Positions 34,991 to 59,110 of a stretch of 64,000 nt of DNA are shown here, piece after piece; the stretch's first letter is position 1, and each line of letters starts with the position of its first letter. The DNA lies in the sequence record PV764603.1. The stretch is one strand, 5' to 3'. The position numbers and the translations under genes are program-made. The notes under the pieces are model-generated. The model had not been told where the DNA came from. It worked only from the letters and a program-made list of their open reading frames with translations, and did not search any database.

Positions 34991-36171
34991 ACTCCCTTCC
35001 GGCTAATCCTCAACCCCTGTCCCTCCACTCTAGGCCCATCCACACCCATCCCGCCTATCCTCCTCCCCTGCACATTCCCTCCGGCAAAAGCTTCCCTACC
35101 CATAACAAGGTAGAGAATAGGAATAGGGAGGATAGGGAGATAACCATAGCAGCATAGACAGTGAGGGAAGAGAATACAGGGAAGAACATAGGGGCAGGGA
35201 ATAAGCCTACTGCACACAATACAGAAGAGACAGGGACATAAGCTGGTATCCACACTAGATAGAAGCCATAGAGGATCATGCAAGAGATAGCAGCTATCCA
35301 GACCAATACCTTCGGTATCTCCCTACAGGACCAGACTAGGCAGTTAGTAGACAATGACCTAATCTCCCCTAGGGTCAAAGCCATATTGTTGGAGCAGCGC
35401 TCCACCGCCCTACTGTCTGACCGCATGGCAATCATTGGTCATCCTACACTGACTGCCCTGCTTACCAACCCATTCACCATCACGGGAGGATCACCCTATT
35501 ACCGTCGCTATCGGGTACGCACACTACGCCACTGCCGCACCACACTTGCAGTGTCGCCTCGCATCCCCATCAAAAACCTCTAGAAGTCGGTTACACCCAC
35601 TGAGTAATCGGGCAGATAAGGCAACAGGGTGCCATTTTGGCATCATCTGGACAACTACCGGAGTTTAGGGCAGTAAAGACCAGTATTTTCGTGCGAACAC
35701 CTTGCAGACCCCTAGGGCTTCCCCTTTGAACGAGTGGAGGCCCTTCTTTTTGACCGAAATATGACTGATTGACCACGTCAAAGCTCGGAGTCAAGGATTT
35801 GGCACCTTCCTGTAGAGGCCGAAAGAAGATTTTCTTCTCGGACCTCGGGCATCCCCTCATGCGTTGCCAAAATGGCACCGTCGGAGTGTCGGAATACACC
35901 CGAAAATGGCCCTTGACGTGGTACCCCACAGGGCGAAAAATTTAGGGGCTCCAGGATGCGTCTAGACACCCGATCCTTGCCAAGGATTACCGAGTTTGAC
36001 GCAAGGATTTTTCAAATATTTTGAGTCTGAGCAGGCCAATCCTGTAAATATTGGGTGTGGGCAAAACAGGGTGCCAAAATGGCAACATCACTGCCCTGTC
36101 CGACCAATTTTTCGACGCAGAACGCACCCTCCGTCCGAGGGTATGAATTTTTTGACGACCGAGGGTCAAAA
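34991..36171. other. Largely non-coding, strand-asymmetric segment with palindromes (candidate origin, terminus or control region)
   Basis: C/T-rich 34991-35100, then A/G-rich 35101-35280. Three TGCCA-N3-TGGCA sites, ATCCTTG-C-CAAGGAT at 35973-35987, and CCTGTAAATA at 36041-36050. Confidence 0.5.
35278..35583 (+). CDS. Possible hypothetical protein
   Basis: GAGGA RBS, 101 aa, atypical codon usage. Confidence 0.35.
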   Translation: MQEIAAIQTNTFGISLQDQTRQLVDNDLISPRVKAILLEQRSTALLSDRMAIIGHPTLTALLTNPFTITGGSPYYRRYRVRTLRHCRTTLAVSPRIPIKNL

Positions 36172-36702
36172 ATGACCAAAATTTCAGATATTTTGACCGA
36201 CGACGCAGTGACCGAAGTGGTGCGATCTGTTTTGCATCGCCTAGTGGTGGTCCGAGGTCTTTCTCTCTCCGAAATCATCAGGGACAACAGCGATATTGAT
36301 CCTGACCTGTTCGGAGCACGACTTTTCTCGGTGATCGCCAACACCGAGGTGCAAATTCCTGCCTCACCGAAGGGGACCGAGGTAGCGACTCCAGATTCAA
36401 GGGAGGACCGAGGGTACAAGAGGGGTGTGCGCGATTATGTCCTGTTCCGGCAGGACAAGAGTGGTAGGGGCCGGAGGGAATACCTGCACGTGAGCACGAA
36501 TCTGTACGGGTGGCAGCAGTCCATACCCCAGGATGCGCTGACTCACTTTGAGAGTGTAGAGGCGGTCCAGAATCAGGTGAACAGGATGCGGCTTGATACC
36601 GGCTACTTCTACTACACCGCTACCGCTGACGATCTGATAGACGAAGCGCTGCATAAGGTAGGGATAGTCCAGCATGCTATCGAGGTACCTAATGATGTTT
36701 AG
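36172..36702 (+). CDS. Hypothetical protein (KISDIL family)
   Basis: GAGGG RBS, ATG 36172; similar N-terminus to 36814 and 43864. Confidence 0.6.
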   Translation: MTKISDILTDDAVTEVVRSVLHRLVVVRGLSLSEIIRDNSDIDPDLFGARLFSVIANTEVQIPASPKGTEVATPDSREDRGYKRGVRDYVLFRQDKSGRGRREYLHVSTNLYGWQQSIPQDALTHFESVEAVQNQVNRMRLDTGYFYYTATADDLIDEALHKVGIVQHAIEVPNDV

Positions 36703-36813
36703 GATCAGCCCAGCCTTGTATGGGTTCTTCAAAGGGTGGACCGAATTGGCTACCACTATGGGAGTGAGGAAACGCGGGAAATCCAAGTACACTAGGAAGA
36801 GGGGTAAGCGGAA

Positions 36814-37314
36814 ATGAAGTTGAGTGACATTCTGACTGAGCGGGATTTGATTGATCTGGCAGATGAGGTGTCGTCCGGGAACTACGAATCCCTGATCGAG
36901 AAGCTGGGTGGGTATGAGTTTGAACCACCCTATATGATCGGGGTAGCAGTGGAGGCACACAAGCTTGCAACGTGCGCTACCGAGGATGATCCTCCCCTGA
37001 TATGGGATAGCGTGTCGCCGGAGTCGATGCAGAAGTTAGGTGAGGGGCTGGCCGATAGTATGCACACCCTGTCCATGCAGCCGGGTACCACACGCAGGCT
37101 GCTAGGCAAGGCGGAGACAGACTGGAACCTACGAGAGGCCATGAATTTGGCTGAGGCTCGGGTGTTCCGTAGCATGTCAGGACTCAGGGCAGTACGGGTT
37201 GATGAGAATGGTGATCCCCTGCGAGGACCAGCATACGAGGCGGGCGAGTGGAGTCTGCGTAACTGGGAAGCAATCAAGCGTGACCAACAAGGAGAACAAG
37301 ATGCTCAAGATTGA
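36814..37314 (+). CDS. Hypothetical protein (MKLSDIL start)
   Basis: 166 aa co-oriented ORF. Confidence 0.55.
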   Translation: MKLSDILTERDLIDLADEVSSGNYESLIEKLGGYEFEPPYMIGVAVEAHKLATCATEDDPPLIWDSVSPESMQKLGEGLADSMHTLSMQPGTTRRLLGKAETDWNLREAMNLAEARVFRSMSGLRAVRVDENGDPLRGPAYEAGEWSLRNWEAIKRDQQGEQDAQD

Positions 37315-38917
37315 CCGTGACCGATACGATGAGGATGCGAACGCGCCCCTGACGCTGGGTCAGATCATCAAGTGGGTGGAGACACAGCCGGAAGGTCAAT
37401 GCTTCTATGGCCTGCACATGCCGCACAGTTACCGGGGCTACTACCAATGCTTGGCGTTCACTCCTAGCCCCGAGACCATCAGCAAGGCAGAGTTGTTGCA
37501 CAGGCTTCGGGAAGGTGTGGGTGCATACGACGGGTACAAGGGTGGCATCTACCTCATGAGCTTCGGCACCGAGTGCTACCTTGCTCGATACAGCGAGACG
37601 GGTACGCCCATGTGCATGCGGTGGCTGGAGGATGAGCTTAGGGTAACGGTGATGCCGGAGGGTACAGCGCGCGCATCACGGGATGCCGTAGCCGATGTAC
37701 AATCAGAGACAGCGGTGGAGGAAGCACGGGATGCGCGCGCTGTACCCGTAGACCCTGTGTCCACCCATCACGTGCATCGGGGTGCAGAGTCTCTACCCTG
37801 CTACTGTGCACGCACGACAGACCACCCGAATGGCCATGAGCTACTGTGGGAGAACCCCGCACCTCATGCTGCTGGTGCACCGTCGCCCTCGGTCACCATG
37901 AAGATCAGTAGCCTGCACGCTGACAAGATGGACCCAGTGGATAGCCTCGAATCCCTGCCTCCCGATATGCGCCTTGGCTCTGCTGATTACCTCGACTACC
38001 TTGACTCGGATACGCCGATGACCACCAGTGATCCCAACGATTTGGTTGAACGTTGCAACAAGTATGTGGCGCTGCGTGAGCTAGCCGAACAGGGCTTGTA
38101 TGCGGTGGCGCGCGCTGCACAGGAAATGCGGGCTGTGTCTCAGCGTGGCAAGGACGCAGCTATCGTCCTTACCGAGACCCTCCCTTCTGAGCAGATGCGC
38201 GAAAGCATTCGGTCTACCGTTGCGTTCTTCACCGCACAGGAGGAGCGTATGACCAACATTCTCAACACCCTCTCGGCAGCGCGCGTCGATGCTTTGCAGG
38301 AGGGAGACTGTCGGAGGATTGATGGCCAGTGGTACGTCTGCACTGATCCCGACATGGCGCGCTTCGTTACCTTTGATGGGCTGGAGACTCCGTGCACCAA
38401 CCTCAAGCGAGCGTATGATGCTCTTCGGTTCTACGTTGATGCCAGCGACACTGAGTTGGAGGAACGTGGGATTGATCGTGCTGAGGCACTGCGTCTTGCC
38501 CGTGATGCTGAGCGCGCGCTGCACGAACACAACCACCTGAGCAAGGACCCAGATGACGTGTGGTGGGCCGAACCCCTGCCGCTTACTGCTATCGATCACG
38601 GTGCTGTCGTTCCCCTTGATACCGAGTGGCAGGTGACGACCAACCCGGTGCCTGCCGATGCTGATCTTGGTGGCGAGGATGGTCCCGTGTGGGCTGTGAT
38701 GCTGCCGTTGTCCTTCGGGCCGAACGCCTACTACGATCCCTCGCCTCTGATCCAGCGTTTCAACCGAGGCTCCCACGTCCACTTCTTCCGTAAGGCTACG
38801 GCCACGAAGATCCGCGATCACTTCAACGCAATGGTGCGCACCAGCACTGAACAACCGTTGGCCGAGATCGTTCACCACACCCTACAGCGACACGTACCCG
38901 GAGACAACAATGCTTGA
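37301..38917 (+). CDS. Large composite hypothetical protein
   Basis: AGGAG RBS, ATG 37301. N-terminal LTLGQII...PHSYRGYY.CLAF...GYKGG.Y.M module, a pattern usually seen as a small stand-alone phage protein. Confidence 0.65.
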   Translation: MLKIDRDRYDEDANAPLTLGQIIKWVETQPEGQCFYGLHMPHSYRGYYQCLAFTPSPETISKAELLHRLREGVGAYDGYKGGIYLMSFGTECYLARYSETGTPMCMRWLEDELRVTVMPEGTARASRDAVADVQSETAVEEARDARAVPVDPVSTHHVHRGAESLPCYCARTTDHPNGHELLWENPAPHAAGAPSPSVTMKISSLHADKMDPVDSLESLPPDMRLGSADYLDYLDSDTPMTTSDPNDLVERCNKYVALRELAEQGLYAVARAAQEMRAVSQRGKDAAIVLTETLPSEQMRESIRSTVAFFTAQEERMTNILNTLSAARVDALQEGDCRRIDGQWYVCTDPDMARFVTFDGLETPCTNLKRAYDALRFYVDASDTELEERGIDRAEALRLARDAERALHEHNHLSKDPDDVWWAEPLPLTAIDHGAVVPLDTEWQVTTNPVPADADLGGEDGPVWAVMLPLSFGPNAYYDPSPLIQRFNRGSHVHFFRKATATKIRDHFNAMVRTSTEQPLAEIVHHTLQRHVPGDNNA

Positions 38918-39278
38918 CCTTAGCAATGACGAACTGGCCAATGCCCTCAACAGCATCAACATGCAGAACTTCACTCTGTCCTCGGGCACAGAGGCGATGC
39001 AGGGTATCGCACGTGGACTCCGCGCTTTCAGTTCTACGCGTAGCGCCTTGCATGAAATGCACCTCAACACCGAAGCTCAGCACGCAGAGTGGACGAAGAA
39101 GCTGGAAGAGGCCAGCCATGAACAGCGCGCTCACGTACTGGCGATCCTGAGTTCCCTTGCACAACAGCGCGCGGGTCTGCACAAAGCACTGACCACCATC
39201 ATGCACACCGAAGACATGATCCTCTCCATCGCCACCGAACTGACGGGCGTCACCTTCCCCGTGGAGGCCGCAGAATGA
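38910..39278 (+). CDS. Hypothetical helical protein
   Basis: GGAG RBS; overlap-coupled. Confidence 0.55.
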   Translation: MLDLSNDELANALNSINMQNFTLSSGTEAMQGIARGLRAFSSTRSALHEMHLNTEAQHAEWTKKLEEASHEQRAHVLAILSSLAQQRAGLHKALTTIMHTEDMILSIATELTGVTFPVEAAE

Positions 39279-39433
39279 GTCTGAGTGATTGCCCTAAGTG
39301 TTGGGACACGCCGTGTGGCTGCGGCCACCAGTACGAACAGTGGACAGAAGAACGTCTGCGTGACCACATCAAGATGCTGGAAATGGTGCTTGCCAAGAAG
39401 CAGGCGCAACGATACAAAGGAGAGTCCAAGTGA
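39275..39433 (+). CDS. Small Cys-rich protein (52 aa, not in the ORF track)
   Basis: MSLSDCPKCWDTPCGCGHQY...; ATGA and GTGA overlaps; GGAGG RBS. Confidence 0.65.
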   Translation: MSLSDCPKCWDTPCGCGHQYEQWTEERLRDHIKMLEMVLAKKQAQRYKGESK

Positions 39434-39702
39434 GCATGTATCGAGTTGTGTTGCAGCCTGTATGCAGGGCGTTCGGTGGATGGGTGAGCGATCCGGATCG
39501 TGTTGATCGCAGCCATCTGATGAACACCACGGATACACTGGCGGTGTTGCAGTTTGACGACAACGGCGAATCCACCGGCAAAACGTTGTCCCAGACCTAC
39601 CTGTTCCTGTGCCTCGGTGACATTGTGGAACTCCACGACGACCAAGGCAGCATCGGACACCACCGCGTACTGGACGTGATGGATGCGGAGGTAGCGCAAT
39701 GA
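39430..39702 (+). CDS. Hypothetical protein
   Basis: GGAG RBS, GTG start overlapping the previous stop. Confidence 0.55.
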   Translation: MSMYRVVLQPVCRAFGGWVSDPDRVDRSHLMNTTDTLAVLQFDDNGESTGKTLSQTYLFLCLGDIVELHDDQGSIGHHRVLDVMDAEVAQ

Positions 39703-39861
39703 ACGTGGTACAACATCGGGAAGCTCAACCACCATGAAGGCGAGGTCATCCTGCATCCCGGCACCAAGTACAAGGTATCGCACCACTCCCAGCACACTGA
39801 TCCCGACAGCGGGCACATCTACCACGTGGTCCACCTGACCGCACACAGTCCGAAGCACTAA
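39703..39861 (+). pseudogene. 3' remnant of a His-rich ADP-ribosyltransferase gene
   Basis: Start-less frame TWYNIGKLNHHEGEVILHPGTKYKVSHHSQHTDPDSGHIYHVVHLTAHSPKH* aligns with the C-terminus of the ART at 42349 (HEAETVLHHGNKFKVLGHSVH). Confidence 0.75.
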
Positions 39862-39865
39862 TCCG

Positions 39866-39901
39866 AAGGGCCTATCCTGCTGACGTGGGGTAGGCCCTTT
39901 T
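39866..39901 (+). terminator. Intrinsic terminator after the ART remnant
   Basis: aagggcctatcc...ggggtaggccctttt. Confidence 0.75.
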
Positions 39902-39985
39902 GCATAGCCCGGCGATAGGTTCCAATTTCGTGCAAGTTGTCCCTGAATCGAACCTGAACGGCAGCTGAACGAAAATGAACAGTGG

Positions 39986-40014
39986 TTGACAGGGGGATAG
40001 GGTCCAGGCATAAT
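39986..40014 (+). promoter_or_regulatory. Host sigma70-type (early) promoter
   Basis: TTGACA (39986-39991), 17-bp spacer, CATAAT (40009-40014), upstream of gene 40097. Confidence 0.85.
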
Positions 40015-40096
40015 AGGCTTGTGGTAGGGAAACAAGGGCGTCAGCCCACCGGGACCCACCTATCGGAACCCCTAGTCAGATACCTCGGAGAACCTC

Positions 40097-40441
40097 ATGA
40101 AGCGCAAGTCCCCTCGGAACCGTCCCCTGACCGCTGAACTGATGCCGGTACGCGCTGCCGCCGAGCGCATGGACCTTCGGACCGCCAACCTGTCCAGCCA
40201 CCTGATGACGGTGGAGTTCCCGGAGCAGGACGACTCCCAGGTTATCCTGACCTTCATGCTGAACAAGAATGCCCAGCTGGTGGCCTCGGTGGAACTGGAA
40301 CGTGCGGGTCATGTGCAGTGCGCCACCCCTTACCTGCGCGGTGCCATGCTTCGGAACAGCCTGAGCGCCACGCTTGACGACTATGACGTGGAGCGCGACC
40401 GCATCGCCTCGGTCATCGCCTTCCTCGACAGCATCGTCTAA
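40097..40441 (+). CDS. Hypothetical early protein
   Basis: GGAG RBS; first gene after the sigma70 promoter; strongly GC3-biased codons. Confidence 0.7.
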   Translation: MKRKSPRNRPLTAELMPVRAAAERMDLRTANLSSHLMTVEFPEQDDSQVILTFMLNKNAQLVASVELERAGHVQCATPYLRGAMLRNSLSATLDDYDVERDRIASVIAFLDSIV

Positions 40442-40458
40442 CCCTTCGGAGCCCCCTC

Positions 40459-40821
40459 ATGAACGCCAACGTCCTCGCCCTGATCGTACAGACCGCCGTT
40501 GAAATGGGACTGGTGGTCCAGCATACCGCCAACGACATTACTGTCCTGTTTGATGAATCGGAGATGGAAGCGGCAGGCATGTTGGTGCAAGCTGCTCCGG
40601 CCCTTCGATTTGTGTATGGCCCTGTCCTGACCGCCTACCCCGAAGCTCACATGGGATACCACGAAGGGGAGTTGCAGGCCATCGGGTTCGCCACCAAGGG
40701 CGTTCGGGGCGACGAACTGCGCGACTGCATCGAAAAGATGAAGACCCACTTCAAGCCCGAAGCCGTCATGCCCCTCTTTACCTTCCTCGGCCTGCTGAAC
40801 CGCAACGCTGCCCACCACTAA
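40459..40821 (+). CDS. Hypothetical early protein
   Basis: GGAG RBS. Confidence 0.65.
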   Translation: MNANVLALIVQTAVEMGLVVQHTANDITVLFDESEMEAAGMLVQAAPALRFVYGPVLTAYPEAHMGYHEGELQAIGFATKGVRGDELRDCIEKMKTHFKPEAVMPLFTFLGLLNRNAAHH

Positions 40822-40831
40822 GGAACCGACC

Positions 40832-40951
40832 ATGAAGATCAAGACCATCCTGCTGACCGCCGTTGCTATCTCGGCCATCCTTTGGGCCGTCGCCATGATT
40901 GGCAGCGCCCCGTTCGTCGGCCCCACCCTTTCCACCACCGTCCGCGCCTAA
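40832..40951 (+). CDS. Small membrane peptide (39 aa, not in the ORF track)
   Basis: AAGGA RBS; MKIKTILLTAVAISAILWAVAMIGSAPFVGPTLSTTVRA*. Confidence 0.65.
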   Translation: MKIKTILLTAVAISAILWAVAMIGSAPFVGPTLSTTVRA

Positions 40952-40970
40952 CCCAACCAGCACCAAAGGA

Positions 40971-41312
40971 ATGACCATGAACGCCAAGACCGCCAAGACC
41001 ACTTCGGACGTTGATGCACAGCGCGATGCCATGCAGAAAGCCAACAAGGCCGAGCAGTTCCGCCGCCACTCCCTGCTGCAAAGCATGACGGCCGACGGTC
41101 CCCTGTTCGTCCCCCTCGACAAGGCCCACACCTTCGGTCTCGCTCCCGCTGGCCGTGGCGGTGCCGCCCACCTTGACGCGCTGGAATCCCTCGGCCTCAT
41201 GGCTGCGCTGGTGCCCCACGCAACCAACCCGGACACATGGGGCGGCTACCTCGTCTGCCGGTCCAGCTGGGCACGCGAGCAAGTAGGTCCGGACGACGCC
41301 AAGTTCCTCTGA
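40971..41312 (+). CDS. Hypothetical early protein
   Basis: AAAGGA RBS, ATG 40971. Confidence 0.65.
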   Translation: MTMNAKTAKTTSDVDAQRDAMQKANKAEQFRRHSLLQSMTADGPLFVPLDKAHTFGLAPAGRGGAAHLDALESLGLMAALVPHATNPDTWGGYLVCRSSWAREQVGPDDAKFL

Positions 41313-41387
41313 CCCTGTAAACCTAGATTAGACGCGCCGCCTTCAGGCGGCTTCGTCGTATCTGCCACCCCGACCTAAAGGAATATC

Positions 41388-41738
41388 ATGGACCACGCTA
41401 CCGCAACCGTCATCAACGAACTGGCCAAGGACACGCCCGACGTCGCCTTCCGCATGCTGGGAATCGACGACGCCATCATCACGTTCAAGGCACCGGAAGG
41501 TGCGACCGAGCGTTGGCAACTGCGCATCGTAGTGACCGAAGAAGGCAAGCTGGAATGCTGCGCCGACCTCGTTGACACCCTGACCGACAAGGGCAGCCAG
41601 AGCTACCTGATCTATCGGCCCCTCAACCACGTCCGACAGACGCTGCATGATCTGCGTGCAGCCCTGCGTCTGGACCCACAATCTGTCGTGCACTTCCTGT
41701 CCCAACTCGCCGACCGTACCCGCCTCCTCAACGCATAA
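41388..41738 (+). CDS. Hypothetical early protein
   Basis: AAAGGA RBS; preceded by hairpin GCCGCC-TTCA-GGCGGC (41336-41351). Confidence 0.65.
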   Translation: MDHATATVINELAKDTPDVAFRMLGIDDAIITFKAPEGATERWQLRIVVTEEGKLECCADLVDTLTDKGSQSYLIYRPLNHVRQTLHDLRAALRLDPQSVVHFLSQLADRTRLLNA

Positions 41739-41748
41739 GGAACCCATC

Positions 41749-42015
41749 ATGAACAAGCTCTCCGCATTCTTCTCCAACCTGATCGCCTCTTCCGCTACCG
41801 ACATTGACGGGTTCTCCATCAAGGTCAAGGGCGAGCGCACGCTGGAACTGCTGGATGAAGGCCGCGCCGCAGTGGCCGACCCTGAGTTCGTGCAGCGTCA
41901 TGGCAACTACTGGCACTTCGTTGAACAGAAGCATCCCGAGTACCTGCTGGTCAGCACGGGCCGACTGGTCATCGTCAAGGTACTCCCTGACAACGCCATC
42001 GACGCAGCCGCATGA
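41749..42015 (+). CDS. Hypothetical early protein
   Basis: AAGGA RBS, ATG 41749. Confidence 0.65.
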   Translation: MNKLSAFFSNLIASSATDIDGFSIKVKGERTLELLDEGRAAVADPEFVQRHGNYWHFVEQKHPEYLLVSTGRLVIVKVLPDNAIDAAA

Positions 42016-42263
42016 GTACCGACACCCCGTTGCCCAACGTCGAGGCCGTGACCCACAACACCTTCGTGGTGCGCACGCAAGCAGGCTTCCGACAGGCCCT
42101 CAAAGCATGGGGCGGTAAGGTAAAGGGCGACACGATTCACGACTGGCCCACCGCCTATCCGAGTCTTGTCACGTTCACCGTCGGCTACTGCGGGTATCAT
42201 TACGTGCAGTGTACTGCCATCCACCTCAACACACTGATGCCCGTAGTGGGCCGGCACGCATAA
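42012..42263 (+). CDS. Hypothetical early protein
   Basis: ATGA overlap. Confidence 0.6.
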   Translation: MSTDTPLPNVEAVTHNTFVVRTQAGFRQALKAWGGKVKGDTIHDWPTAYPSLVTFTVGYCGYHYVQCTAIHLNTLMPVVGRHA

Positions 42264-42348
42264 GGAAATCCCATGCCCGACGTTACCCTGCACCTGTGCA
42301 TCATCTGAGTCCTCTAATTTCAGGTGTCTTCCCCTAAGCAGAGAAACC

Positions 42349-43137
42349 ATGAGAGTCCTGTCTACCGTAGGGTCCAACAAGTTCGTCTGGACCGATCATC
42401 ACCTAGACTACACCGCACCCGAAGACGATTCGCTATCTAGTGAGACTGCTTCCTCCGAAGAACACGCTCATGCGTTGAAACGTACTTCCTTACATCCCGA
42501 AGACCAAAAAGGGCACAAGGCACACGTAACTCGGGCACGCCAAACATCCGAACACGTTGGCCATGCAGTAGATCACTACAGAAGTATCGGACACAACGAT
42601 TTTAACCGAGAACTCCGCCATCCCTCCCACAAGGGTAAGATCAAAGGCAACGGTGACTACAACTTCACCGACCATTCGCTACATGATCTGCATAAAGGAT
42701 TGGGGCACGCTACCAGTTATCAGCTGAAACACAAGACCGCTGTGTACCGTGGGGTGGGCGAAGCCGCCCACAAGATCAAGGCGCTCAAGAAGGGAGACAC
42801 CTTCACTGACCACGGGTACACCAGTACCAGCCATAGCCCCTCAGTAGCCATTTCTTCCTTCGGTCATAGCGAGCACACGGGTACGCATCGAGAGCATCAC
42901 GTCGTCAAGATTCATTTGCCCAAAGGCTCCAAGATTATGCACGTACCTCACCACGTTGATGATGGCCTTACCCGGCATGAGGCAGAAACGGTGCTGCACC
43001 ACGGTAACAAGTTCAAGGTCTTGGGTCACAGCGTCCACGATCTACCGGGTAGTCCGTCCGGACACTCTTCCTCATTCGATAGCACCAAGCACCGGGTGCA
43101 CGTAACCCACGTCAAGCTAGTAAAGCAACGCAAATGA
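42349..43137 (+). CDS. Histidine-rich ADP-ribosyltransferase (R-S-E clade, VIP2/Alt-like)
   Basis: YRSIGHNDFNRELR, TAVYRGV (R), FTDHGYTSTS (S), RHEAETVL (ExE); about 39 His in 262 aa. Confidence 0.85.
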   Translation: MRVLSTVGSNKFVWTDHHLDYTAPEDDSLSSETASSEEHAHALKRTSLHPEDQKGHKAHVTRARQTSEHVGHAVDHYRSIGHNDFNRELRHPSHKGKIKGNGDYNFTDHSLHDLHKGLGHATSYQLKHKTAVYRGVGEAAHKIKALKKGDTFTDHGYTSTSHSPSVAISSFGHSEHTGTHREHHVVKIHLPKGSKIMHVPHHVDDGLTRHEAETVLHHGNKFKVLGHSVHDLPGSPSGHSSSFDSTKHRVHVTHVKLVKQRK

Positions 43138-43144
43138 GCGACTC

Positions 43145-43166
43145 AGGCATCCGAAAGGGTGCCTTT
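43145..43166 (+). terminator. Intrinsic terminator after the ART gene
   Basis: aggcatcc-gaaa-gggtgcct followed by T's. Confidence 0.7.
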
Positions 43167-43192
43167 GTCGTTTCTGCGCTCCCGAGTCGAGG

Positions 43193-43217
43193 GTGCCATT
43201 TTGGCATCCTGTAAATA
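43193..43217 (+). promoter_or_regulatory. Palindrome TGCCATTTTGGCA abutting TCCTGTAAATA
   Basis: Intergenic, upstream of an AAGGAGG RBS. Confidence 0.7.
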
Positions 43218-43330
43218 TAGGGACAAAGGAGGCGCTATGCCCCTCAAAGAACGGGTCCAACGGGGTGGTCCTTTTATCCCCGACTTCGTAGACGTTCGCT
43301 ACATCACCCATAGCCCAACAAGGAAGCCCC

Positions 43331-43867
43331 ATGAGCCCGAAGCTCTGCATCATGAACGACACCCACAACCAGCAGTCGGCTGTGATCGTCACCCTCCAGA
43401 AAGACGTGATTGCCCACACGATAAAGTTTGCCTACGAAGGTGACCCGGAAGGCCCTCGTTTCCGCCTGCCCACCGATCGGGGTAGCCTGATGCGCCTGCG
43501 TGACCTGATCGACAGCGTGCTTGATCCGAGCGTGGTTCCTGTCAACACCCTGCGTCAGCTGGCCGACCGTTGGGCAGCTGATCGTGACTACAAGGGCAGC
43601 CCGGTTGACGACATTCGCGCGCTGATTGGCGACACGCAAGATTCAGCACCCACCCTCGATCCCAAGTACCGGATGGCGTTGAAGTTTGCTATAGGTCATC
43701 TGGACATGAGCGACCAACCCGAGTACGGACAGCTGCAAGAACTGTTGGCCATGACCGAGCGTGGGGAAGGTGCACGTAACCCGTGCGCGCACTGCGATGA
43801 CGGCAAGGTCATCAACGAGAACTTCCGTACTGTTGAGCCGTGCCGCCACTGTGAGGACGCCAAATGA
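43331..43867 (+). CDS. Hypothetical protein with C-terminal CxxC...CxxC
   Basis: AGGA RBS; ends CAHCDDG...CRHC. Confidence 0.6.
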   Translation: MSPKLCIMNDTHNQQSAVIVTLQKDVIAHTIKFAYEGDPEGPRFRLPTDRGSLMRLRDLIDSVLDPSVVPVNTLRQLADRWAADRDYKGSPVDDIRALIGDTQDSAPTLDPKYRMALKFAIGHLDMSDQPEYGQLQELLAMTERGEGARNPCAHCDDGKVINENFRTVEPCRHCEDAK

Positions 43868-44379
43868 AGATATCCGAACTGCTGGACGAAGACACCATAT
43901 CCGAACTGGTCACTTCGATCTTCCGCATCCGACTGGACTCCGGCCGCAGCGTAGGTGCCGTACTGACCCTCAACTACCCGGCCGGTCACGTGCGTGCTCT
44001 GCTAACCAACGCGATCAACGAAACCGAAGTGTATGGAGAGGTCTCGACCTCCGTATCTACGGGTAGTGACCAACCTGATCCGCTGCTGGATGCACTAGGA
44101 GGCAACAGGCAGACCTACCACTTCCTGACAGGCAAGTATCCCGAGGAAGACGTGGAAGACGTGGCGGCAATGGCCCGACGCTGGCAATGGCTGTGCATCA
44201 ACCGACCGACCCTGCTCATCACTGGCATCTTCGGGAACGGCTGCACAAACAAAACCATCGATGACGTGGAAATCATCATCGACCGCGCCGACGATCGGGG
44301 CCTGCTGCCAGTGCGCTTCCCTCCAACTGAGGACTGCCACGTGGGACCGAACTGCATCTGCCAACACAAGGACCAGTAA
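43864..44379 (+). CDS. Hypothetical protein (KISELL family)
   Basis: ATGA overlap; N-terminus similar to 36172. Confidence 0.6.
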   Translation: MKISELLDEDTISELVTSIFRIRLDSGRSVGAVLTLNYPAGHVRALLTNAINETEVYGEVSTSVSTGSDQPDPLLDALGGNRQTYHFLTGKYPEEDVEDVAAMARRWQWLCINRPTLLITGIFGNGCTNKTIDDVEIIIDRADDRGLLPVRFPPTEDCHVGPNCICQHKDQ

Positions 44380-45143
44380 TGAACGTCACCAACTCCGTCA
44401 CCAAAGCCATCACCGAGTTCCTCCGCACCTCGGGGTGGGAGCGCACTACCCTTGAACTGACGCGCACTAAACTGATCCTCATCGCCCATTCGGGTGACGC
44501 CGTGGTCACCATCACGTCCACCGACGATGACGACTTTGTACGGCAGCTGCGTGTGCTGACCTCTGGCTACCGTCGCATGCAGGTAGAGGAGGATGAGGAA
44601 GAAGCCGATGATGATGATGATGATGATGCTCCCGCCCCGCAGTCCCGTTCCCCAGGGGTACGCCCGCGTAGGACTCCCGAACAGGCACCACAGTGTCGTG
44701 AGTGCGACGCTGATCCGGGTGAGCCCTGTGACTGCGGTACCGAGAACGAGGTCAACGCGCACCTAGGTGCAAACTGGATCGAGCTTGATCCCGAGCAGGA
44801 TCGGATGGGCCTCTGTTGGGTATCCAACACCGTGCGCCTTGCGTTCTTGGCCCGTATCAAGAAGCTGGAGAAGGATCGCTTGCGTGTCTCCCGCGAGACC
44901 ACCAAGGGAACCAGTCGTTGCACTATGTCACAGTGCCGAGACTTGGGCAGCGGTCGCTATCTGCATGTTGGTACCGGCAAGGGCATGTGGTATCGTGGCC
45001 GTCAGGTAAACGTGACGTGGAAGGAAACGCTGGTCCACTACATTGAGCATCATGGCTTCTGCCCACCGCCTGAGTTCCGCGAGGCCATCGACGCATTGAT
45101 GAACCACAAGAAGCCCGTACCTACGAAGAGGGACAAGCCATGA
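44379..45143 (+). CDS. Hypothetical protein with acidic linker and Cys/His C-terminal domain
   Basis: EEDEEEADDDDDDD linker, CREC...CDC, C-terminal TLVHYIEHHGFCPPPEF. Confidence 0.6.
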   Translation: MNVTNSVTKAITEFLRTSGWERTTLELTRTKLILIAHSGDAVVTITSTDDDDFVRQLRVLTSGYRRMQVEEDEEEADDDDDDDAPAPQSRSPGVRPRRTPEQAPQCRECDADPGEPCDCGTENEVNAHLGANWIELDPEQDRMGLCWVSNTVRLAFLARIKKLEKDRLRVSRETTKGTSRCTMSQCRDLGSGRYLHVGTGKGMWYRGRQVNVTWKETLVHYIEHHGFCPPPEFREAIDALMNHKKPVPTKRDKP

Positions 45144-50550: not shown

Positions 50551-50579
50551 AGAAAAGGCCCCAATTGGGGCCTTTTCTT
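50550..50579. terminator. Perfect 30-bp palindrome, bidirectional terminator
   Basis: aagaaaaggccccaa|ttggggccttttctt. Confidence 0.8.
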
Positions 50580-50599
50580 TTGCCGGAAATAATGAGAGG

Positions 50600-50625
50600 T
50601 TGCCAAAATGGCAATCCTGTAAATA
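50600..50625 (+). promoter_or_regulatory. Palindrome TGCCAAAATGGCA + ATCCTGTAAATA
   Basis: Intergenic, upstream of an AAGGAGG RBS. Confidence 0.7.
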
Positions 50626-53596: not shown

Positions 53597-53845
53597 GTGA
53601 GCTACTCAGTGTTGTTCCGGCCGCAGCGTGGCGACTTTCAAACTAGCTACGCTGAGACTGTGCGAGTACGTAACACCCCCGAGGGTATTGCTGCACACCT
53701 GACTCAGATACTCGGTCAGGTGGTGGGCCCTTCGCAAATCACATTCGAGGATGCAGGCTTTGACAAGCGCCTCGGTACCAACAATCAATACGTTCTTCTC
53801 GACGGCCAATGCGTAGGCTACGTTTGGGAAGGCGACGAAATCTAA
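53597..53845 (+). CDS. Hypothetical protein
   Basis: GGAG RBS, GTG 53597. Confidence 0.5.
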   Translation: MSYSVLFRPQRGDFQTSYAETVRVRNTPEGIAAHLTQILGQVVGPSQITFEDAGFDKRLGTNNQYVLLDGQCVGYVWEGDEI

Positions 53846-53855
53846 AGGACAGACC

Positions 53856-54158: not shown

Positions 54159-54168
54159 GGGGCCGCGT

Positions 54169-54627: not shown

Positions 54628-54637
54628 GGATCGCGTC

Positions 54638-54916
54638 ATGTTCGAGAAAATCAAACGCTACTTGTTCGTCCAGTTGTTGCGGTACTTCATCCACGACAAG
54701 ATCAAGTGGCAAGCAATCCTGCACGTCTACTGGATTGAATACCGCAAGCGTTACACCGAAGAGACGACGCCCACTTCCCTTGACAGCATCTACACTGTCT
54801 TGAAGGAAGCGTCCGAACGTGAGTTGGCTGCCAGCGCACGTGATCGCAAGATTCGGGAACTCAATCAGCAAGTAGCACAAATCACTAGCGAGAACTATCA
54901 CGACTATTGGGACTAG
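54638..54916 (+). CDS. Hypothetical protein
   Basis: GAGGA RBS, ATG 54638. Confidence 0.55.
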   Translation: MFEKIKRYLFVQLLRYFIHDKIKWQAILHVYWIEYRKRYTEETTPTSLDSIYTVLKEASERELAASARDRKIRELNQQVAQITSENYHDYWD

Positions 54917-54919
54917 ACC

Positions 54920-55303
54920 ATGAAAGAGTTAGGCCATAGCGGCATAATGATTTATCCGCTTACCCCGTTGCAGTCCGAAGCCTCAAAGATTCTCGCGGAA
55001 GAATGCGTAGAACTTGCGAAGGAATGCAGCAAGATCGAGCGTTGCGGTTTGCCATTCATTGCGACTGGTGAAGCACTCACGTTCAAGGAAAAGTTCACTG
55101 AGGAAATTGCGGACGTCCTCACGCTGATCGACGAGGCAATCGCTGCCGGGTTGGTAGATCGCCAGCGCCTTGTCCAAGTGCTTGACAACAAGCCCGCACG
55201 TCTGCGCAAGTGGACGACCCACCTTGGCTACGCTCCAGTGCGTTACGCCAATCCCCTGCTCCTCAACTTCAATTCTTCTGACGACACTTCGGATCGAGAC
55301 TGA
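54920..55303 (+). CDS. MazG-like nucleotide pyrophosphohydrolase
   Basis: ILAEECVELAKECSK...EEIADVL (ExxE...ExxD all-alpha NTP-PPase motif). Confidence 0.75.
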   Translation: MKELGHSGIMIYPLTPLQSEASKILAEECVELAKECSKIERCGLPFIATGEALTFKEKFTEEIADVLTLIDEAIAAGLVDRQRLVQVLDNKPARLRKWTTHLGYAPVRYANPLLLNFNSSDDTSDRD

Positions 55304-55305
55304 CT

Positions 55306-55761
55306 ATGACCATTCGCTATATCCACCTGCGCTCCCCGGTAATCCCGTACCTGCAAGAAACGAGTGAACACTTCGGCGGCATCACTGTGGCCTACGAACT
55401 GTGGACCACCAAGGACCCGACCGGCGTCTCCCACCTGTTCGCCAACGTAGCACTGGCCCTGTGCGATCACCGGGATCGTTACAACAAGGTGGAAGGCCGT
55501 CGCATTGCTTCCGAGCGCCTGCGCAATCGTCTCTCGGTGTCTCCGCTGCTCGCGTTCACCACGCACCTTGGCTTCGCTGCTATGGAAGAGGAAGTTGGCC
55601 ACGGCGTCGGTTCCTATATGGACCGCTTCTACGCCAAGCTGACGCGCGACGCTTCGGGTGGCATCGACGTGAACGAACGCGAAATCAAGGTCACCAAGAT
55701 TCTGACCCAAGTTGCCATCCAGCATGGCGAGGTTTGCTTCTACTCTTGGGGAGGCAAGTAA
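55306..55761 (+). CDS. Hypothetical protein
   Basis: 151 aa; GGITVAY...C...DRYNK.EGRRIA pattern seen in phage hypotheticals. Confidence 0.6.
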   Translation: MTIRYIHLRSPVIPYLQETSEHFGGITVAYELWTTKDPTGVSHLFANVALALCDHRDRYNKVEGRRIASERLRNRLSVSPLLAFTTHLGFAAMEEEVGHGVGSYMDRFYAKLTRDASGGIDVNEREIKVTKILTQVAIQHGEVCFYSWGGK

Positions 55762-55767
55762 TCGAAA

Positions 55768-55783
55768 GGGGCCTTCGGGCCCC
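55768..55783 (+). terminator. Hairpin (possible terminator)
   Basis: GGGGCC-TTCG-GGCCCC; weak U-tract. Confidence 0.5.
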
Positions 55784-55803
55784 ATTCCATTGAGGGACAT
55801 ACC

Positions 55804-56130
55804 ATGCAATATACAGGCGGCTGCGGACCGATGCTAATCAGTAGCAGTACAAAGTGGCTCACCAAGATTCACCTCTCCCTAGAGGACGGCAAATGGAAGG
55901 CCACATGGAAACCAACTAACGGGTACCACCCAAAGGACTGCCCTTCTTTCGTGTTCAGCGCTGCGACTCCGGTGGAAGCCTACGCTACTACGATGGCCGA
56001 AGCGTCCAACTACCTGCTGTGTATTTTCTGGCAACCGCCTCGGACATACAACGGAAGGTACAAGCCTGCGCATCTTGCGTTGCTCGATGCAATCACGCTC
56101 CAAGCTAAGAGGGATCGCAATGGGAATTGA
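55804..56130 (+). CDS. Hypothetical protein
   Basis: GAGGGA RBS. Confidence 0.5.
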   Translation: MQYTGGCGPMLISSSTKWLTKIHLSLEDGKWKATWKPTNGYHPKDCPSFVFSAATPVEAYATTMAEASNYLLCIFWQPPRTYNGRYKPAHLALLDAITLQAKRDRNGN

Positions 56131-56539
56131 GAACGGTGTAGGACTGAGCTACAACGACTACCGAGCAATGAATGGTCGCCAGATTGTGTGGCGATTGGTA
56201 AAGGAAGCTAATGGCAGCTTCACTCACATTCTGGAATTCAACGGCAAGCGCGGCATCTTCCCCAGCGACGATCCCGAGGATATTGAGAAGCATTCCAAGT
56301 ACCTCAACGCAGAGTCCTACCTGCGCGCTATTAACGTGGTCAGCAATGGCGACGGTACTGCAACCGGGACAGGCCACCTGATCGTGGCAGAAGACTACTT
56401 CACCTTTGCGCTTGCAATGGTTCCGATGGTTGTTCGCCAAGGCAGGCACAAGGGCAAGAATCTCCCGATTAAGAAACAAGTGTGCGTGTTCAAGGCAGGC
56501 AAGATCGCCGACTACCTACATTCCGAGGCCACGGTATGA
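56120..56539 (+). CDS. Hypothetical protein
   Basis: GAGGGA RBS, ATG 56120. Confidence 0.55.
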   Translation: MGIENGVGLSYNDYRAMNGRQIVWRLVKEANGSFTHILEFNGKRGIFPSDDPEDIEKHSKYLNAESYLRAINVVSNGDGTATGTGHLIVAEDYFTFALAMVPMVVRQGRHKGKNLPIKKQVCVFKAGKIADYLHSEATV

Positions 56540-56781
56540 GCAAGATCGACGTACAGGAAATCATGCGCGAAGTGCGTGAGAACCTAGACCGACTGCAAGC
56601 GTGCAAGGGCCACAAGTGGCCGAAGATCGAACGTGAGAAACGTTCGCCGTTGGAGAAGTACACGTGCACTGAATGCAAAGGTAAGGTCGGCTTCACGGAA
56701 ATGCTCTACTATGTGCGTGGTGCTGTGCACTACGGCGGTGTGGACCCCAACACAATCTCCCCGGAGTGGCCGTTCAAATGA
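56536..56781 (+). CDS. Small Cys/His protein
   Basis: ACKGH...YTCTECKG; ATGA overlap. Confidence 0.55.
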   Translation: MSKIDVQEIMREVRENLDRLQACKGHKWPKIEREKRSPLEKYTCTECKGKVGFTEMLYYVRGAVHYGGVDPNTISPEWPFK

Positions 56782-56993
56782 GTGATAGCTTTGTAGTGCA
56801 ACAGAAGCTGGGAACGAAGTCGCTGTATTTCACCACCATTGATCGAGGCGGTGCCGTGTGGTCCGAAGGTGATCTGGCCAAGGCCACTCAGTTCGCTTCG
56901 GAAATCAATGCGCAGGACATTGCGGAATTCATCGCCGAACGTGCCGTTGGAACTTGGGAGGTAGTTACGTATGCGACCGCCGCAGCCGCGTGA
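56778..56993 (+). CDS. Hypothetical protein
   Basis: ATGA overlap at 56778. Confidence 0.5.
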   Translation: MSDSFVVQQKLGTKSLYFTTIDRGGAVWSEGDLAKATQFASEINAQDIAEFIAERAVGTWEVVTYATAAAA

Positions 56994-57513
56994 AGTTTGG
57001 ACCCACACAAGCGGTAGGGACTACACTGTCCTGCTGATCGCTAACCAGCATTCAGAGAATCCGAAGTACCCTGTGACTGTCGTGTACGAGGGTGACAACG
57101 GTAGGGTGTGGAGTCGCCCGCTTAGTGACTGGCATCGCTCCATGACGTACAAGGCGGAGTGCCTGCACAATTGGGTAGATGCGCGCAACAAGTACATCGA
57201 CTCGGGTGAGGTATGCCTGACCTGTTTCAAGATGCGTGCTGGCAACCCGACTACGGAAGGATTCAAGATCAACTGGATCGACCCGGAGTTGTCCTTGGTG
57301 CATACCAAGCCTCTAACGGTTATGCCGCAGGACGTAAAGAAGACCCTCAATGATTGGATCGAAAAGGAGTTCCCTACTCTGTCCAACATGCGCCGCTTTG
57401 TGGGCAGGTACGAAGAAGGTCAGGGCTACCCGGTGGTGCTCGACGGTTGCATGATGGGACGAGTGGCTATTGCTTACTTTGATCGTGACCCTTCGGACTA
57501 TCTCTATGACTAA
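56971..57513 (+). CDS. DUF1653-like domain fusion protein
   Basis: WTHTSGRDYTVLLIA...VVYEG.NGRVWSRPLSDW pattern; GGGAGG RBS. Confidence 0.6.
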   Translation: MRPPQPREVWTHTSGRDYTVLLIANQHSENPKYPVTVVYEGDNGRVWSRPLSDWHRSMTYKAECLHNWVDARNKYIDSGEVCLTCFKMRAGNPTTEGFKINWIDPELSLVHTKPLTVMPQDVKKTLNDWIEKEFPTLSNMRRFVGRYEEGQGYPVVLDGCMMGRVAIAYFDRDPSDYLYD

Positions 57514-57925
57514 GCCCGGCATCTTTCTAATCCAGCGCGAGCTAGAAGGAAGGCTCCTCATTCAACTTCTCAGCGAAGGTGGCTCCCAGCAAATCGCCCG
57601 TGCCAACTTTTATGCGGACGACCGTGGCGCGTGGGTGTTCAACGTGCTAGTGCATGAGCCGTTCCGTAGAATGAAGATGGGTAGGATGCTGCTAGAGGGA
57701 ATCGCAACCTACCTCCGTGATCCGGACAAGACTATCAGCTTCAAGGTAGACCACGACAACGAGGTGGCGCTGAAATTCTACAGCAGCTTGGGGTTCAAGC
57801 GAACCGGAGTATTGCAGAATTCAAGAGGCGCTGGGCTGGACGAAGTAGTCATGGAGGCTCGGATACGAAACACCACGGTGAGCCCACCAACCATGAACAA
57901 GTGGACTTATCAAATCACGGTATAG
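57506..57925 (+). CDS. GNAT-family N-acetyltransferase
   Basis: NVLVHEPFRRMKMGRMLL (acetyl-CoA motif A); VDHDNEVALKFYSSLGF (motif B). Confidence 0.88.
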   Translation: MTKPGIFLIQRELEGRLLIQLLSEGGSQQIARANFYADDRGAWVFNVLVHEPFRRMKMGRMLLEGIATYLRDPDKTISFKVDHDNEVALKFYSSLGFKRTGVLQNSRGAGLDEVVMEARIRNTTVSPPTMNKWTYQITV

Positions 57926-57926
57926 A

Positions 57927-57952
57927 GTGCCATTTTGGCAACCCTGTAAATA
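57927..57952 (+). promoter_or_regulatory. Palindrome TGCCATTTTGGCA + CCCTGTAAATA
   Basis: Intergenic, upstream of gene 57980. Confidence 0.7.
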
Positions 57953-57979
57953 TCAGATACCTAACACACTAGGACTGTC

Positions 57980-58549
57980 ATGACTGCCCCGATCAGGCTA
58001 TACGACCCTTTCGTCGTCACCTACTACGTGCAGGACAAGGAAGCTTTGATGGCCAACCATCGGTCCCTGTTCTCCGTTGATGAAGTAAACAAGATGCGCT
58101 TCCCAATCGTCATCGGTATGGATGACGTGCCTCAGTGGATGAATGCACAGGAGTACCGGGACCATCTAGGCGTCCGTATGCAGGCGCTCAATCGCTACCT
58201 GTTCCCTCCGGACTTTAACCTAGATCGCATCCTCTATGTAACCTTGGGCGACCAGCAGGTACCGATTCAGCTTACGCACGCTGAGAGCGTGTTGTTGCAT
58301 TGCCTGATGGAAGCTAATCGGGTAGTGAGTAACGGCGAACTCTTGAATTTGCTGGAGTCGCTGCCCACACGCAATGGTAAGGAGCGGAATTACACCAAGA
58401 GCACGCGCTCTAGCCTAGTGCACGTCATGACGTATCGGATACGGTCGAAGGTGCGCCGCATCGGTGGCCCTACGCTGCTTGAGGTTATGCACGGTGTAGG
58501 CTGCCGTTACGTAGGTGGTTCCAACTTCTCTATGGCACAGGTGAATTGA
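57980..58549 (+). CDS. OmpR/PhoB-type winged-helix DNA-binding protein lacking a receiver domain
   Basis: IQLTHAESVLLHCLM...VVSNGELL...LVHVMTYRIRSKV...LEVMHGVGCRY matches Trans_reg_C. Confidence 0.75.
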   Translation: MTAPIRLYDPFVVTYYVQDKEALMANHRSLFSVDEVNKMRFPIVIGMDDVPQWMNAQEYRDHLGVRMQALNRYLFPPDFNLDRILYVTLGDQQVPIQLTHAESVLLHCLMEANRVVSNGELLNLLESLPTRNGKERNYTKSTRSSLVHVMTYRIRSKVRRIGGPTLLEVMHGVGCRYVGGSNFSMAQVN

Positions 58550-58550
58550 A

Positions 58551-59069
58551 ATGATCGATCCGATGACGGGCACCTTGCCCGCAGTAGAAGAACTGAAAGA
58601 TGATATGGGCTTCAACAATGTTGGCCCGACCTTGAGCAGCAAGCTGTTTCAAGTGTGTGCACAAGAACTGCGTGAGTGGTATCAGAAGCGAGGTCACAAG
58701 ACCTACCCGGCGGACGCTCCGTTCCTGACACGCGAAAAGAAGATGCCGGCCAACACACGGCTGATTCTGACCTACCCATCCAAAGGCCGCTACGTTGTTC
58801 TGCGCCGCGATCCGGGCAACCTCACTCCGCCGACAGTCGAGTATTCACTGGCGCGATTCGCAGTGGTGTCGGCGAAGGCACTCAAGAAGCTCCACCCGGA
58901 GAGCACATTTGTCGTAGCACGTGCGCTGCGCTCAGAATGCTGGTGGGAGTACCCTCACTATCCACGCAACGCACGCCGCAAGATTGCCCCACGCGATCTG
59001 AATCCCGTTGATCTGGCAGACTCTTACGCTGTCATCTTCACCACCGACCTTACCGCCAAGACGCCCTGA
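58551..59069 (+). CDS. Hypothetical protein
   Basis: 172 aa, immediately follows the wHTH gene. Confidence 0.55.
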   Translation: MIDPMTGTLPAVEELKDDMGFNNVGPTLSSKLFQVCAQELREWYQKRGHKTYPADAPFLTREKKMPANTRLILTYPSKGRYVVLRRDPGNLTPPTVEYSLARFAVVSAKALKKLHPESTFVVARALRSECWWEYPHYPRNARRKIAPRDLNPVDLADSYAVIFTTDLTAKTP

Positions 59070-59078
59070 TTGCATAGG

Positions 59079-59110
59079 GTGCCAAAATGGCAACGGTGCC
59101 AAAATGGCAC
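59079..59110. promoter_or_regulatory. Tandem pair of GTGCCAAAATGGCA palindromes
   Basis: Two copies spaced 17 bp, intergenic, upstream of the CYTH gene. Confidence 0.7.

Follow-up and report, generated by a model that had tools for sequence, protein, structure and literature searches.

Among the systems described so far, the Cro/CI-type (XRE) operators of phage 434 (OR/OL), the C-boxes of restriction-modification controller proteins, the Lpa-dependent late promoters of phage P1 and the repressor sites of the actinophages L5 and phiC31 come closest to a 13-bp dyad, TGCCA-(AAA/TTT)-TGGCA, that recurs in the first 64,000 nucleotides (nt 1-64000, the window) of the Xanthomonas jumbo phage PhiXhv-16 (PV764603.1), a jumbo myovirus of 229,154 bp. 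Like the 434 operators, the dyad is part of a short palindrome whose outer bases appear to be contacted and whose A/T-rich centre is apparently read indirectly, it occurs in several copies at promoters, and small XRE-type helix-turn-helix (HTH) genes lie nearby. It differs from them in belonging to a virulent jumbo phage, in being distributed along 25 kb and not grouped in a single immunity region, in being fused to phage-sigma promoters and not to host sigma-70 promoters, and in its unrelated sequence; its binder, moreover, is a candidate.

The C-boxes (C.PvuII, C.AhdI, C.Esp1396I) share with one of the PhiXhv-16 sites a layout of tandem dyads, half-site-N3-half-site, about 4 bp apart, upstream of an operon with a small XRE HTH protein (~80 aa), and the tandem is conserved in a divergent relative. 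By analogy this layout suggests a cooperative tetramer and autoregulation. The half-sites are TGCCA/TGGCA and not GACT (C-box consensus GACT-N3-AGTC), and most copies are single dyads at other promoters. In C-protein systems the restriction endonuclease and methyltransferase genes adjoin the regulator; when the 67 proteins encoded at 35-63 kb were scanned with Pfam, neither an endonuclease nor a DNA methyltransferase turned up, and the methyltransferase-fold matches seen were weak (E 0.006-0.015), in one member each and without assignment to a gene. The P1 Lpa late promoters combine a -10-like element with an inverted repeat near -22 and no -35 element. The composite promoters here would match this geometry if TAAATA is the -10 element, the centre then lying near -24/-25; most promoters of the same class in PhiXhv-16 (11/18) have no repeat, and no Lpa homologue was found, none having been tested. 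The L5 gp71 stoperators and the conserved inverted repeats of phiC31 resemble the dyad as many identical or near-identical intergenic sites of 13-17 bp across an early-gene block, some of them inside transcription units. Mycobacteriophage stoperators are asymmetric (13 bp) and orientation-dependent, whereas the dyad is symmetric and places either AAA or TTT on the transcribed strand. Unlike these temperate actinophages, PhiXhv-16 has been reported to be virulent (PMC13340338) and we saw no integrase or immunity module. Neither promoters nor a sigma factor nor regulators are reported in the publication on this phage (PMC13340338).

From the comparisons below, the dyad is best read as the operator of a phage HTH dimer, and the list of candidate proteins can be sharpened. 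As expected of such an operator, the site forms a 21-bp palindrome, and its promoter or intergenic placement has been kept by selection. On balance we lean towards a ~21-bp operator of a phage-encoded symmetric HTH dimer, probably one of two small proteins called HTH77 and HTH135 here, with repression more likely than activation.

Copies, conservation and symmetry of the dyad

An initial reading made from the letters alone (the sequence-only reading) had listed copies of the dyad between 35.6 and 59.1 kb, and all of them were borne out. The window contains eight exact 13-mers (TGCCAWWWTGGCA), starting at 35630, 35865, 36072, 43194, 50601, 57928, 59080 and 59097; 100 shuffles that preserved the dinucleotides gave 0.04 on average. 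No extra dyad appeared in the window when up to two mismatches were allowed. A megablast of 35000-45000 had matched PhiXhv-16 with 100% identity at the same coordinates. The window was joined to the remaining PhiXhv-16 sequence for whole-genome scans, and over these 229,154 bp there was no ninth copy and no variant with one mismatch, so that all eight lie within 35.6-59.1 kb. All eight are placed in intergenic gaps, although intergenic DNA makes up 6.0% of 35278-63138 (chance ~2e-10). This count used corrected starts for three genes (36173, 50646 and 59131). The annotated starts 36079, 50547 and 59104 overrun dyads or promoters; the alternatives carry Shine-Dalgarno sequences, 50646 and 59131 being also the choice of other gene callers in related contigs and 36173 being conserved in the divergent relative. 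The half-site reported at 6589 is real and stands directly before a promoter motif (TTTTGGCA followed by CCTGTAAATA, 6589-6607, plus strand), but it is a half only, the full 13-mer there having three mismatches, and the promoter has no full dyad. Apart from the dyad, ATCCTGTAAATA is the one non-coding word that recurs in the genome. Genome k-mer statistics are dominated by GAT/GAC and GAA/GAG triplet runs (window 16900-17600, genome 78800-79450), which would encode Asp/Glu-rich low-complexity stretches.

Conservation was examined at two distances. The sister genomes PhiXhv-12, PhiXhv-15, Ep026 and Ep032 are 95-98% identical to PhiXhv-16, and among four close genomes none of 104 dyad positions varied, against 36 of 790 other intergenic positions. 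The divergent relative is a 69-kb Logan contig, ERR6221067_1691, reached by an exhaustive protein search with the winged-helix protein discussed below (one homologue, 35% identical); it is syntenic with PhiXhv-16, with protein identities of 28-87%. The 65.6 kb scanned hold nine exact dyads and no one-mismatch variant, all in the homologous block: the control region has three of them, four are fused to CCTGTAAATA, and two make up a tandem pair with the same 17-bp period as in PhiXhv-16. Two of its four composites come right after terminators and one precedes the orthologue of the winged-helix gene. In orthologous intergenic alignments the arms were identical at 70/70 positions and the promoter at 27/27, against 404/648 (62%) elsewhere, and the only changes within dyads, found at two of the seven sites with an orthologue, turned the whole centre from AAA to TTT or back. 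Judged by these comparisons, which answer the call for conservation in relatives, the dyad is a real, conserved and functionally constrained element.

The site is larger than 13 bp. When half-sites from PhiXhv-16, PhiXhv-15 and the divergent relative were pooled (n=36), the arms were invariant in 36/36, across two lineages with diverged flanks. Outside the arms, position -2 was G in 34/36, -4 was A in 25/36, -3 was G in 21/36, and -1 was never C, which gives a palindrome of ~21 bp, AGGD-TGCCA-WWW-TGGCA-HCCT. The centre is AAA or TTT only, and its orientation relative to the promoter is not fixed, both being seen in both lineages. Constant arms with a centre that flips as a unit are the pattern expected if a two-fold symmetric protein recognises the arms and requires an A-tract in the middle. 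On comparative grounds we strongly favour a symmetric, sequence-specific DNA-binding protein that acts on the dyad at a subset of the promoters carrying the motif TGTAAATA. The sequence-only reading had proposed a dimeric activator or repressor at a subset of phage-sigma promoters; invariant arms and flipping centre speak for the dimer and the subset, and this support does not extend to the direction of regulation. In one public strain (L247 in our set; SRR26420195, 2434-2446) a single dyad forms a perfect 21-bp palindrome, AGGGTGCCAAAATGGCACCCT. Operator copy number thus varies naturally, this strain having a single dyad where all others have the 17-bp tandem duplication (59080-59109).

The same half-sites bear on the idea that the dyad works as a structure, either as an RNA hairpin in processing, stability or attenuation or as an extruded DNA hairpin or cruciform (an N4-type promoter or a replication signal). 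Folding energies of -5 to -14 kcal/mol for single copies and -24 kcal/mol for the tandem pair (z -4.85) would suit it, as would the position of the tandem pair and of the 36072 copy inside likely transcripts. Any complementary pair of arms would fold, however, and yet all 36 have the same sequence, with no covariation. On either strand the outer flanks conform to the half-site preferences, and bases -1 and +1 are often unable to pair, so that these flanks look like independent half-site extensions and not like a base-paired stem. Five or six copies lie upstream of promoters or just past terminators, where little RNA is expected, and AAA and TTT loops both occur on one strand, against strand-specific hairpin recognition. 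A structural role is, in our estimate, hardly probable at all. Several specific elements were also rejected. No TTGC stands at the required distance after any TGGCA, as a sigma-54 promoter (TGGCAC-N5-TTGCW, GG-N10-GC) would have it. As for intrinsic terminators, the 36072 copy alone was flagged, on the minus strand, and no T-run follows the other copies. N4-type hairpin promoters are strand-specific 5-7 bp hairpins with a defined 3-nt loop, read by the virion RNA polymerase; here both loops occur on the same strand and the phage has a sigma factor for the host core enzyme, no search aimed at a virion polymerase having been made. A structured RNA family was set aside since an Rfam scan of 35400-36400 gave no match and the 36 arms do not covary.

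A host (Xanthomonas) protein, for example a global regulator or nucleoid protein exploited by the phage, could also read the dyad. The G/C-flanked, A/T-centred 15-bp core is vaguely like Fis-type sites, and the phage HTH proteins are themselves putative binders. Against a Fis-type protein, the invariant G/C lies at +/-8 and not at +/-7. The sites are all-or-none, with perfect copies and no degenerate ones, which is unusual for host global regulators, and a 17-mer scan of 185,579 genomes gave scattered single matches in unrelated taxa, with no Xanthomonas among the matches listed. We regard a host binder as very improbable.

Composite promoters, the control region and the direction of control

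The 8-nt core TGTAAATA occurs 18 times in the genome, against 3.6 copies expected from base composition. Every one of them points the same way as the genes, and almost all stand immediately before a gene start, at a distance of ~17-40 nt in the copies measured. These promoters are presumed to be read by a phage sigma-70-family factor encoded at 15075-16091 (plus strand; Pfam Sigma70_r2 E 1.3e-3, NCBIfam sigma70-ECF superfamily E 1.3e-5). It is a divergent protein in which only region 2 is detectable, and its homologues are found in PaBG-like jumbo phages.

Three dyads are fused to the exact promoter CCTGTAAATA, all on the plus strand. The dyad at 43194-43206 is followed after 1 nt by CCTGTAAATA at 43208-43217 (composite 43194-43217) and heads the 43.3-50.5 kb operon; in its orthologue at position 24505 of the divergent relative dyad and promoter are identical. 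Just upstream, a terminator-like hairpin with a T-run (43145-43173, plus strand), read directly from the letters, closes the 40.1-43.1 kb operon. The dyad at 50601-50613 is followed after 2 nt by CCTGTAAATA at 50616-50625 (composite 50601-50625) and is likewise preceded by a terminator-like hairpin, AGGCCCCAATTGGGGCCT, with a T-run (50556-50582, plus strand); the gene behind it more likely starts at ATG 50646 than at the annotated TTG 50547. The dyad at 57928-57940 is followed after 2 nt by CCTGTAAATA at 57943-57952 (composite 57928-57952) directly upstream of the winged-helix gene, an arrangement that is syntenic and exact in the divergent relative. The earlier placement of these dyads 0-2 nt before the promoter was essentially right, the gap being 1 nt at 43194 and 2 nt at 50601 and 57928. 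Operator and promoter overlap in the composites, where one CCT serves both as the outer edge of the operator and as part of the promoter CCTG. With TAAATA taken as the -10 element to infer the transcription start, the 13-bp core would span -31/-30 to -19/-18 and the 21-bp site about -34 to -14, centred near -24/-25.

The dyad promoters head three consecutive operons (43.3-50.5, 50.6-57.9 and 58.0-59.1 kb). Together with the promoter P36041 described below and the tandem site, the composites mark a block from ~36 to 59 kb or further, with ~60 small genes, mostly without Pfam families. Those with Pfam matches encode a spermidine-synthase-like protein, a GNAT acetyltransferase, a TM2 protein and the winged-helix protein; a nucleoside triphosphate pyrophosphohydrolase is labelled as such by annotation only. 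The tandem operator (59080-59109, not assigned to a strand) consists of two dyads, 59080-59092 and 59097-59109, 4 bp apart with a 17-bp period. It ends 21 nt before the start of a CYTH gene at 59131, the first gene of an operon (CYTH-HTH135-Cys-rich-HTH77) that encodes two XRE-type HTH proteins.

The remaining copies lie in or at the edge of a 495-bp gap, 35584-36078, which we call the control region and in which two dyads, O1 and O3, stand alone. The O1 dyad (TGCCATTTTGGCA, 35630-35642) lies 47 nt past the stop of the gene at 35278-35583, and at the orthologous site of the divergent relative the centre is the flipped form, AAA. The O3 dyad (TGCCAAAATGGCA, 35865-35877) has a conserved flank, CATGCGT...CC, and an orthologue with TTT. 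Between them, at 35792-35804, is a decayed dyad of which only the right half, TTTGGCA (35798-35804), is left in PhiXhv-16 and PhiXhv-12; at this point the dyad is complete in PhiXhv-15, in Ep026 and in the divergent relative, and it is the ninth of PhiXhv-15 and Ep026. Downstream, P36041 is a promoter-like CCTGTAAATA at 36041-36050 (plus strand), represented by CCTGTAAATG in the divergent relative. The O4 dyad (36072-36084) lies 21 nt downstream of P36041, at ~+9 to +21 of the inferred transcript, and is present in the PhiXhv group. O1, O3, O4 and the decayed dyad carry no strand assignment. Scans for the sigma-70 consensus around the lone dyads gave nothing convincing.

Two directions of control have to be weighed. 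If the dyad were an activator site, a dimer at ~-24 would recruit or remodel the holoenzyme at a promoter with only a -10 element, and the dyad operons would form a delayed class. Such arrangements are known from the P1 Lpa late promoters, with their inverted repeat near -22, and from T4 MotA at -30. Dyad and CCTGTAAATA are joined at a fixed 1-2 nt in three promoters here and four in the relative, a geometry that would suit an activator sensitive to helical face; none of the TGTAAATA promoters has a conserved -35-like element in front of it, and the phage sigma is detectable by region 2 only. On the other side, 11 of the 18 TGTAAATA promoters have no dyad and share the same core, five of them as exact CCTGTAAATA, so the core seems sufficient, and the core of the dyad promoters is not weaker. 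Those dyad-less promoters whose genes can be named precede a clamp loader, a primase and a topoisomerase subunit (replication and nucleotide metabolism); the rest precede unnamed genes. An activator site also fits poorly with one dyad downstream of a promoter and a tandem pair without an adjacent promoter motif. We keep activation as a possible but unlikely role.

Repression is favoured because the core of the dyad promoters matches as well as that of the dyad-less ones, because the operator overlaps the promoter edge, because the 36072 dyad sits downstream of its promoter and because no promoter motif adjoins the tandem pair. We consider it roughly twice as probable as activation. In the mechanism that we propose, a dimer encoded by the phage would bind the 21-bp operator and, given that the site reaches from about -34 to -14 and shares its CCT with the promoter, would touch or exclude the holoenzyme with the phage sigma at the composite promoters. 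The likeliest action would be shut-off, or feedback limitation, of the small accessory genes of the 36-59 kb block, and the same promoter class on the replication genes would stay unregulated. The tandem pair would provide autoregulation of the CYTH-HTH operon, and the three or four sites in the control region could allow cooperative or looped control of P36041.

Candidate binding proteins

The sequence-only reading had named four possible binders, and all are HTH-like proteins: a HigA-like protein (9509), an XRE-like protein (59636, HTH135), a second XRE-type protein (60490, HTH77) and an OmpR-type winged helix (57980, wHTH). HTH77 (60490-60723, plus strand) is a 77-aa Cro/C1-type HTH protein with a basic tail, encoded in the tandem-operator operon. 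It is 87% identical in the divergent relative, residues 1-36 being almost invariant, and matches the HTH domain of PDB 2AUW (E 2.9e-6), XRE/Cro clusters of the atlas (0.95, 181-185 shared features) and Pfam HTH_3 (E 0.03). HTH135 (59636-60043, plus strand), also downstream of the tandem operator, is a 135-aa protein with a typical N-terminal XRE-like motif and 82% identity in the relative. Its atlas leads (HTH_3/HTH_31, 0.91) are weaker than those of HTH77, and it has no Pfam match. No other protein of the neighbourhood is as well conserved as these two.

The third candidate, wHTH (57980-58549, plus strand), has 189 aa and, at its C-terminus, an OmpR/PhoB-like winged helix recognised by a weak match (Pfam Trans_reg_C E 1.7e-4, below the curated cut-off). 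It is the sole protein of 35-63 kb with a Pfam DNA-binding match below E 1e-3, and its gene lies directly behind the dyad-promoter composite in both lineages, where it could be autoregulated. The earlier remark that its own promoter carries the site therefore stands as to placement. As the binder, wHTH is harder to defend. It is the least conserved candidate, its sole homologue being ~34-35% identical although the 13-bp core is the same in both lineages and so are the flank preferences, and the stretch aligned to the OmpR-family recognition helix reads VMTYRIRSKV in one lineage and VFLMRIRKKI in the other. A recognition helix that changed while the operator stayed identical is hard to reconcile with binding by this protein. 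Moreover, OmpR-family domains usually bind direct repeats and not a tight dyad. We consider an autoregulated wHTH binder improbable, and from the sequence data we would rank HTH77 about equal to HTH135 and both above wHTH.

The HigA-like protein (9509-9823, plus strand) matches the NCBIfam HigA-family antitoxin (E 5e-7) and phrog_1381. It falls outside the comparison, as the contig of the divergent relative begins downstream of its position. Its gene adjoins one annotated as thymidylate synthase in PhiXhv-12. A 192-aa 'DNA binding protein' of PhiXhv-12 (47668-48246 in L124) was rejected as the binder, since PhiXhv-16 and PhiXhv-15 lack it and still have all dyads. Between the HTH135 and HTH77 genes, a Cys/His-rich protein of 146 aa (60053-60493, plus strand; 65% identical in the relative) has the motifs CxCxCH and CC, then CH..C.C..H, and no family match; from these motifs it may bind zinc. 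Searches with wHTH, HTH77 and HTH135 in all collections searched returned the PhiXhv group and one Logan lineage only, and scans of IMG/VR and the JGI metagenomes for the composite motif gave chance matches and no further lineage.

Several points weigh against repression by an HTH77 or HTH135 dimer. A centre near -24 is also occupied by some activators (P1 Lpa late promoters, MerR family), and the downstream dyad at 36072, which argues for repression, is missing from the divergent relative. Two lineages make HTH77 and HTH135 indistinguishable as putative binders, and their AlphaFold models are poor (predicted local distance difference test values 64 and 58, respectively). The systematic screen for DNA-binding domains, the Pfam scan already mentioned, was confined to the proteins of 35-63 kb. 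Public RNA runs carry the phage as contigs only, without transcript ends. When the contigs of four public runs were compared with 34600-40500, they contained related strains and no usable transcript ends.

Neighbouring features, other contigs and biological meaning

Upstream of P36041, a block of ~160 bp (35880-36040, plus strand) is almost identical in the divergent relative. It contains a 15-bp palindrome, ATCCTTG-C-CAAGGAT (ATCCTTGCCAAGGAT, 35973-35987), and three of the six genomic copies of CAAGGATT. A second regulator may bind there, or the block may be a small RNA; Rfam gave no match for it. A terminator-like hairpin with a T-run (ACCCTCCGTCCGAGGGT ATGAATTTTTT, 36126-36152, plus strand) lies between P36041/O4 and the likely start 36173; it may be an attenuator and is not conserved in the divergent relative. 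The last gene of the 40.1-43.1 kb operon (42349-43137, plus strand) encodes a 262-aa protein with a match to the ADP-ribosyltransferase exoenzyme family (PF03496, E 2e-8), which may be an Alt/Mod-like host-takeover enzyme. A near-consensus sigma-70 promoter, TTGACA-17-CATAAT, is found at 39986 in the gap just upstream of this operon. Contigs from public runs contain close relatives of PhiXhv-16 in sediment, drinking-water, freshwater, honey and wastewater. One of these strain variants lacks 362 bp at 40092-40455 (gene 40097-40441), while in others segments within 37.3-37.65 kb (37290-37654) are replaced.

A role of the dyad at the origin or terminus, raised as a further possibility by the sequence-only reading, found nothing in its support. 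The gene at 26263-27540 of the window (plus strand), whose orthologues in PhiXhv-12 and PhiXhv-15 are annotated 'chromosomal replication initiator protein DnaA', encodes a clamp-loader-type AAA+ ATPase (DNA_pol3_delta2, E 7.5e-29), and the origin idea thereby loses its only support.

The IMG/VR scan for GTGCCAAAATGGCA showed the same 13-mer clustered in unrelated contigs. One of them (L095; IMGVR_UViG_3300036770_006768, 2532-11342) holds 14 copies as CTGCCATTTTGGCAG, mostly in pairs 29 bp apart; it resembles an integrative and conjugative element or a plasmid (DUF932, DUF6915) and has no PLSDB match. Four copies ~30 bp apart occur in L029 and four within a ~45-bp repeat in L017, and the contigs L115, L068, L112, L073 and L021 also have copies. 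BLASTP and phmmer found no protein common to these contigs and the candidate binders. A common binder was therefore rejected, and the contigs are treated as independent uses of the same word.

A bolder form of the repression model would make a Cro-like dimer a genome-scale silencing switch, acting at phage-sigma promoters over a 25-kb host-takeover block and over its own operon. We regard this as quite unlikely. If true, it would permit a reversible low-expression (carrier or pseudolysogenic) state or to a sharp middle-to-late shut-off, and to our knowledge no silencing circuit of this kind has been described for PaBG-related jumbo phages.

General concepts are unchanged by this work, as textbooks already describe operators bound by HTH dimers of phages. 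Should the binder be found, the operator-promoter fusion would offer a small, transferable part for switching expression in Xanthomonas. How jumbo phages that use the host polymerase with a sigma factor of their own control transcription has hardly been studied. In PhiXhv-16 two cis elements are now defined, the TGTAAATA promoter class with its 18 copies and the 21-bp operator that marks a subset of it, and with three candidate proteins and ~60 small genes between 36 and 59 kb the putative regulon becomes directly testable.

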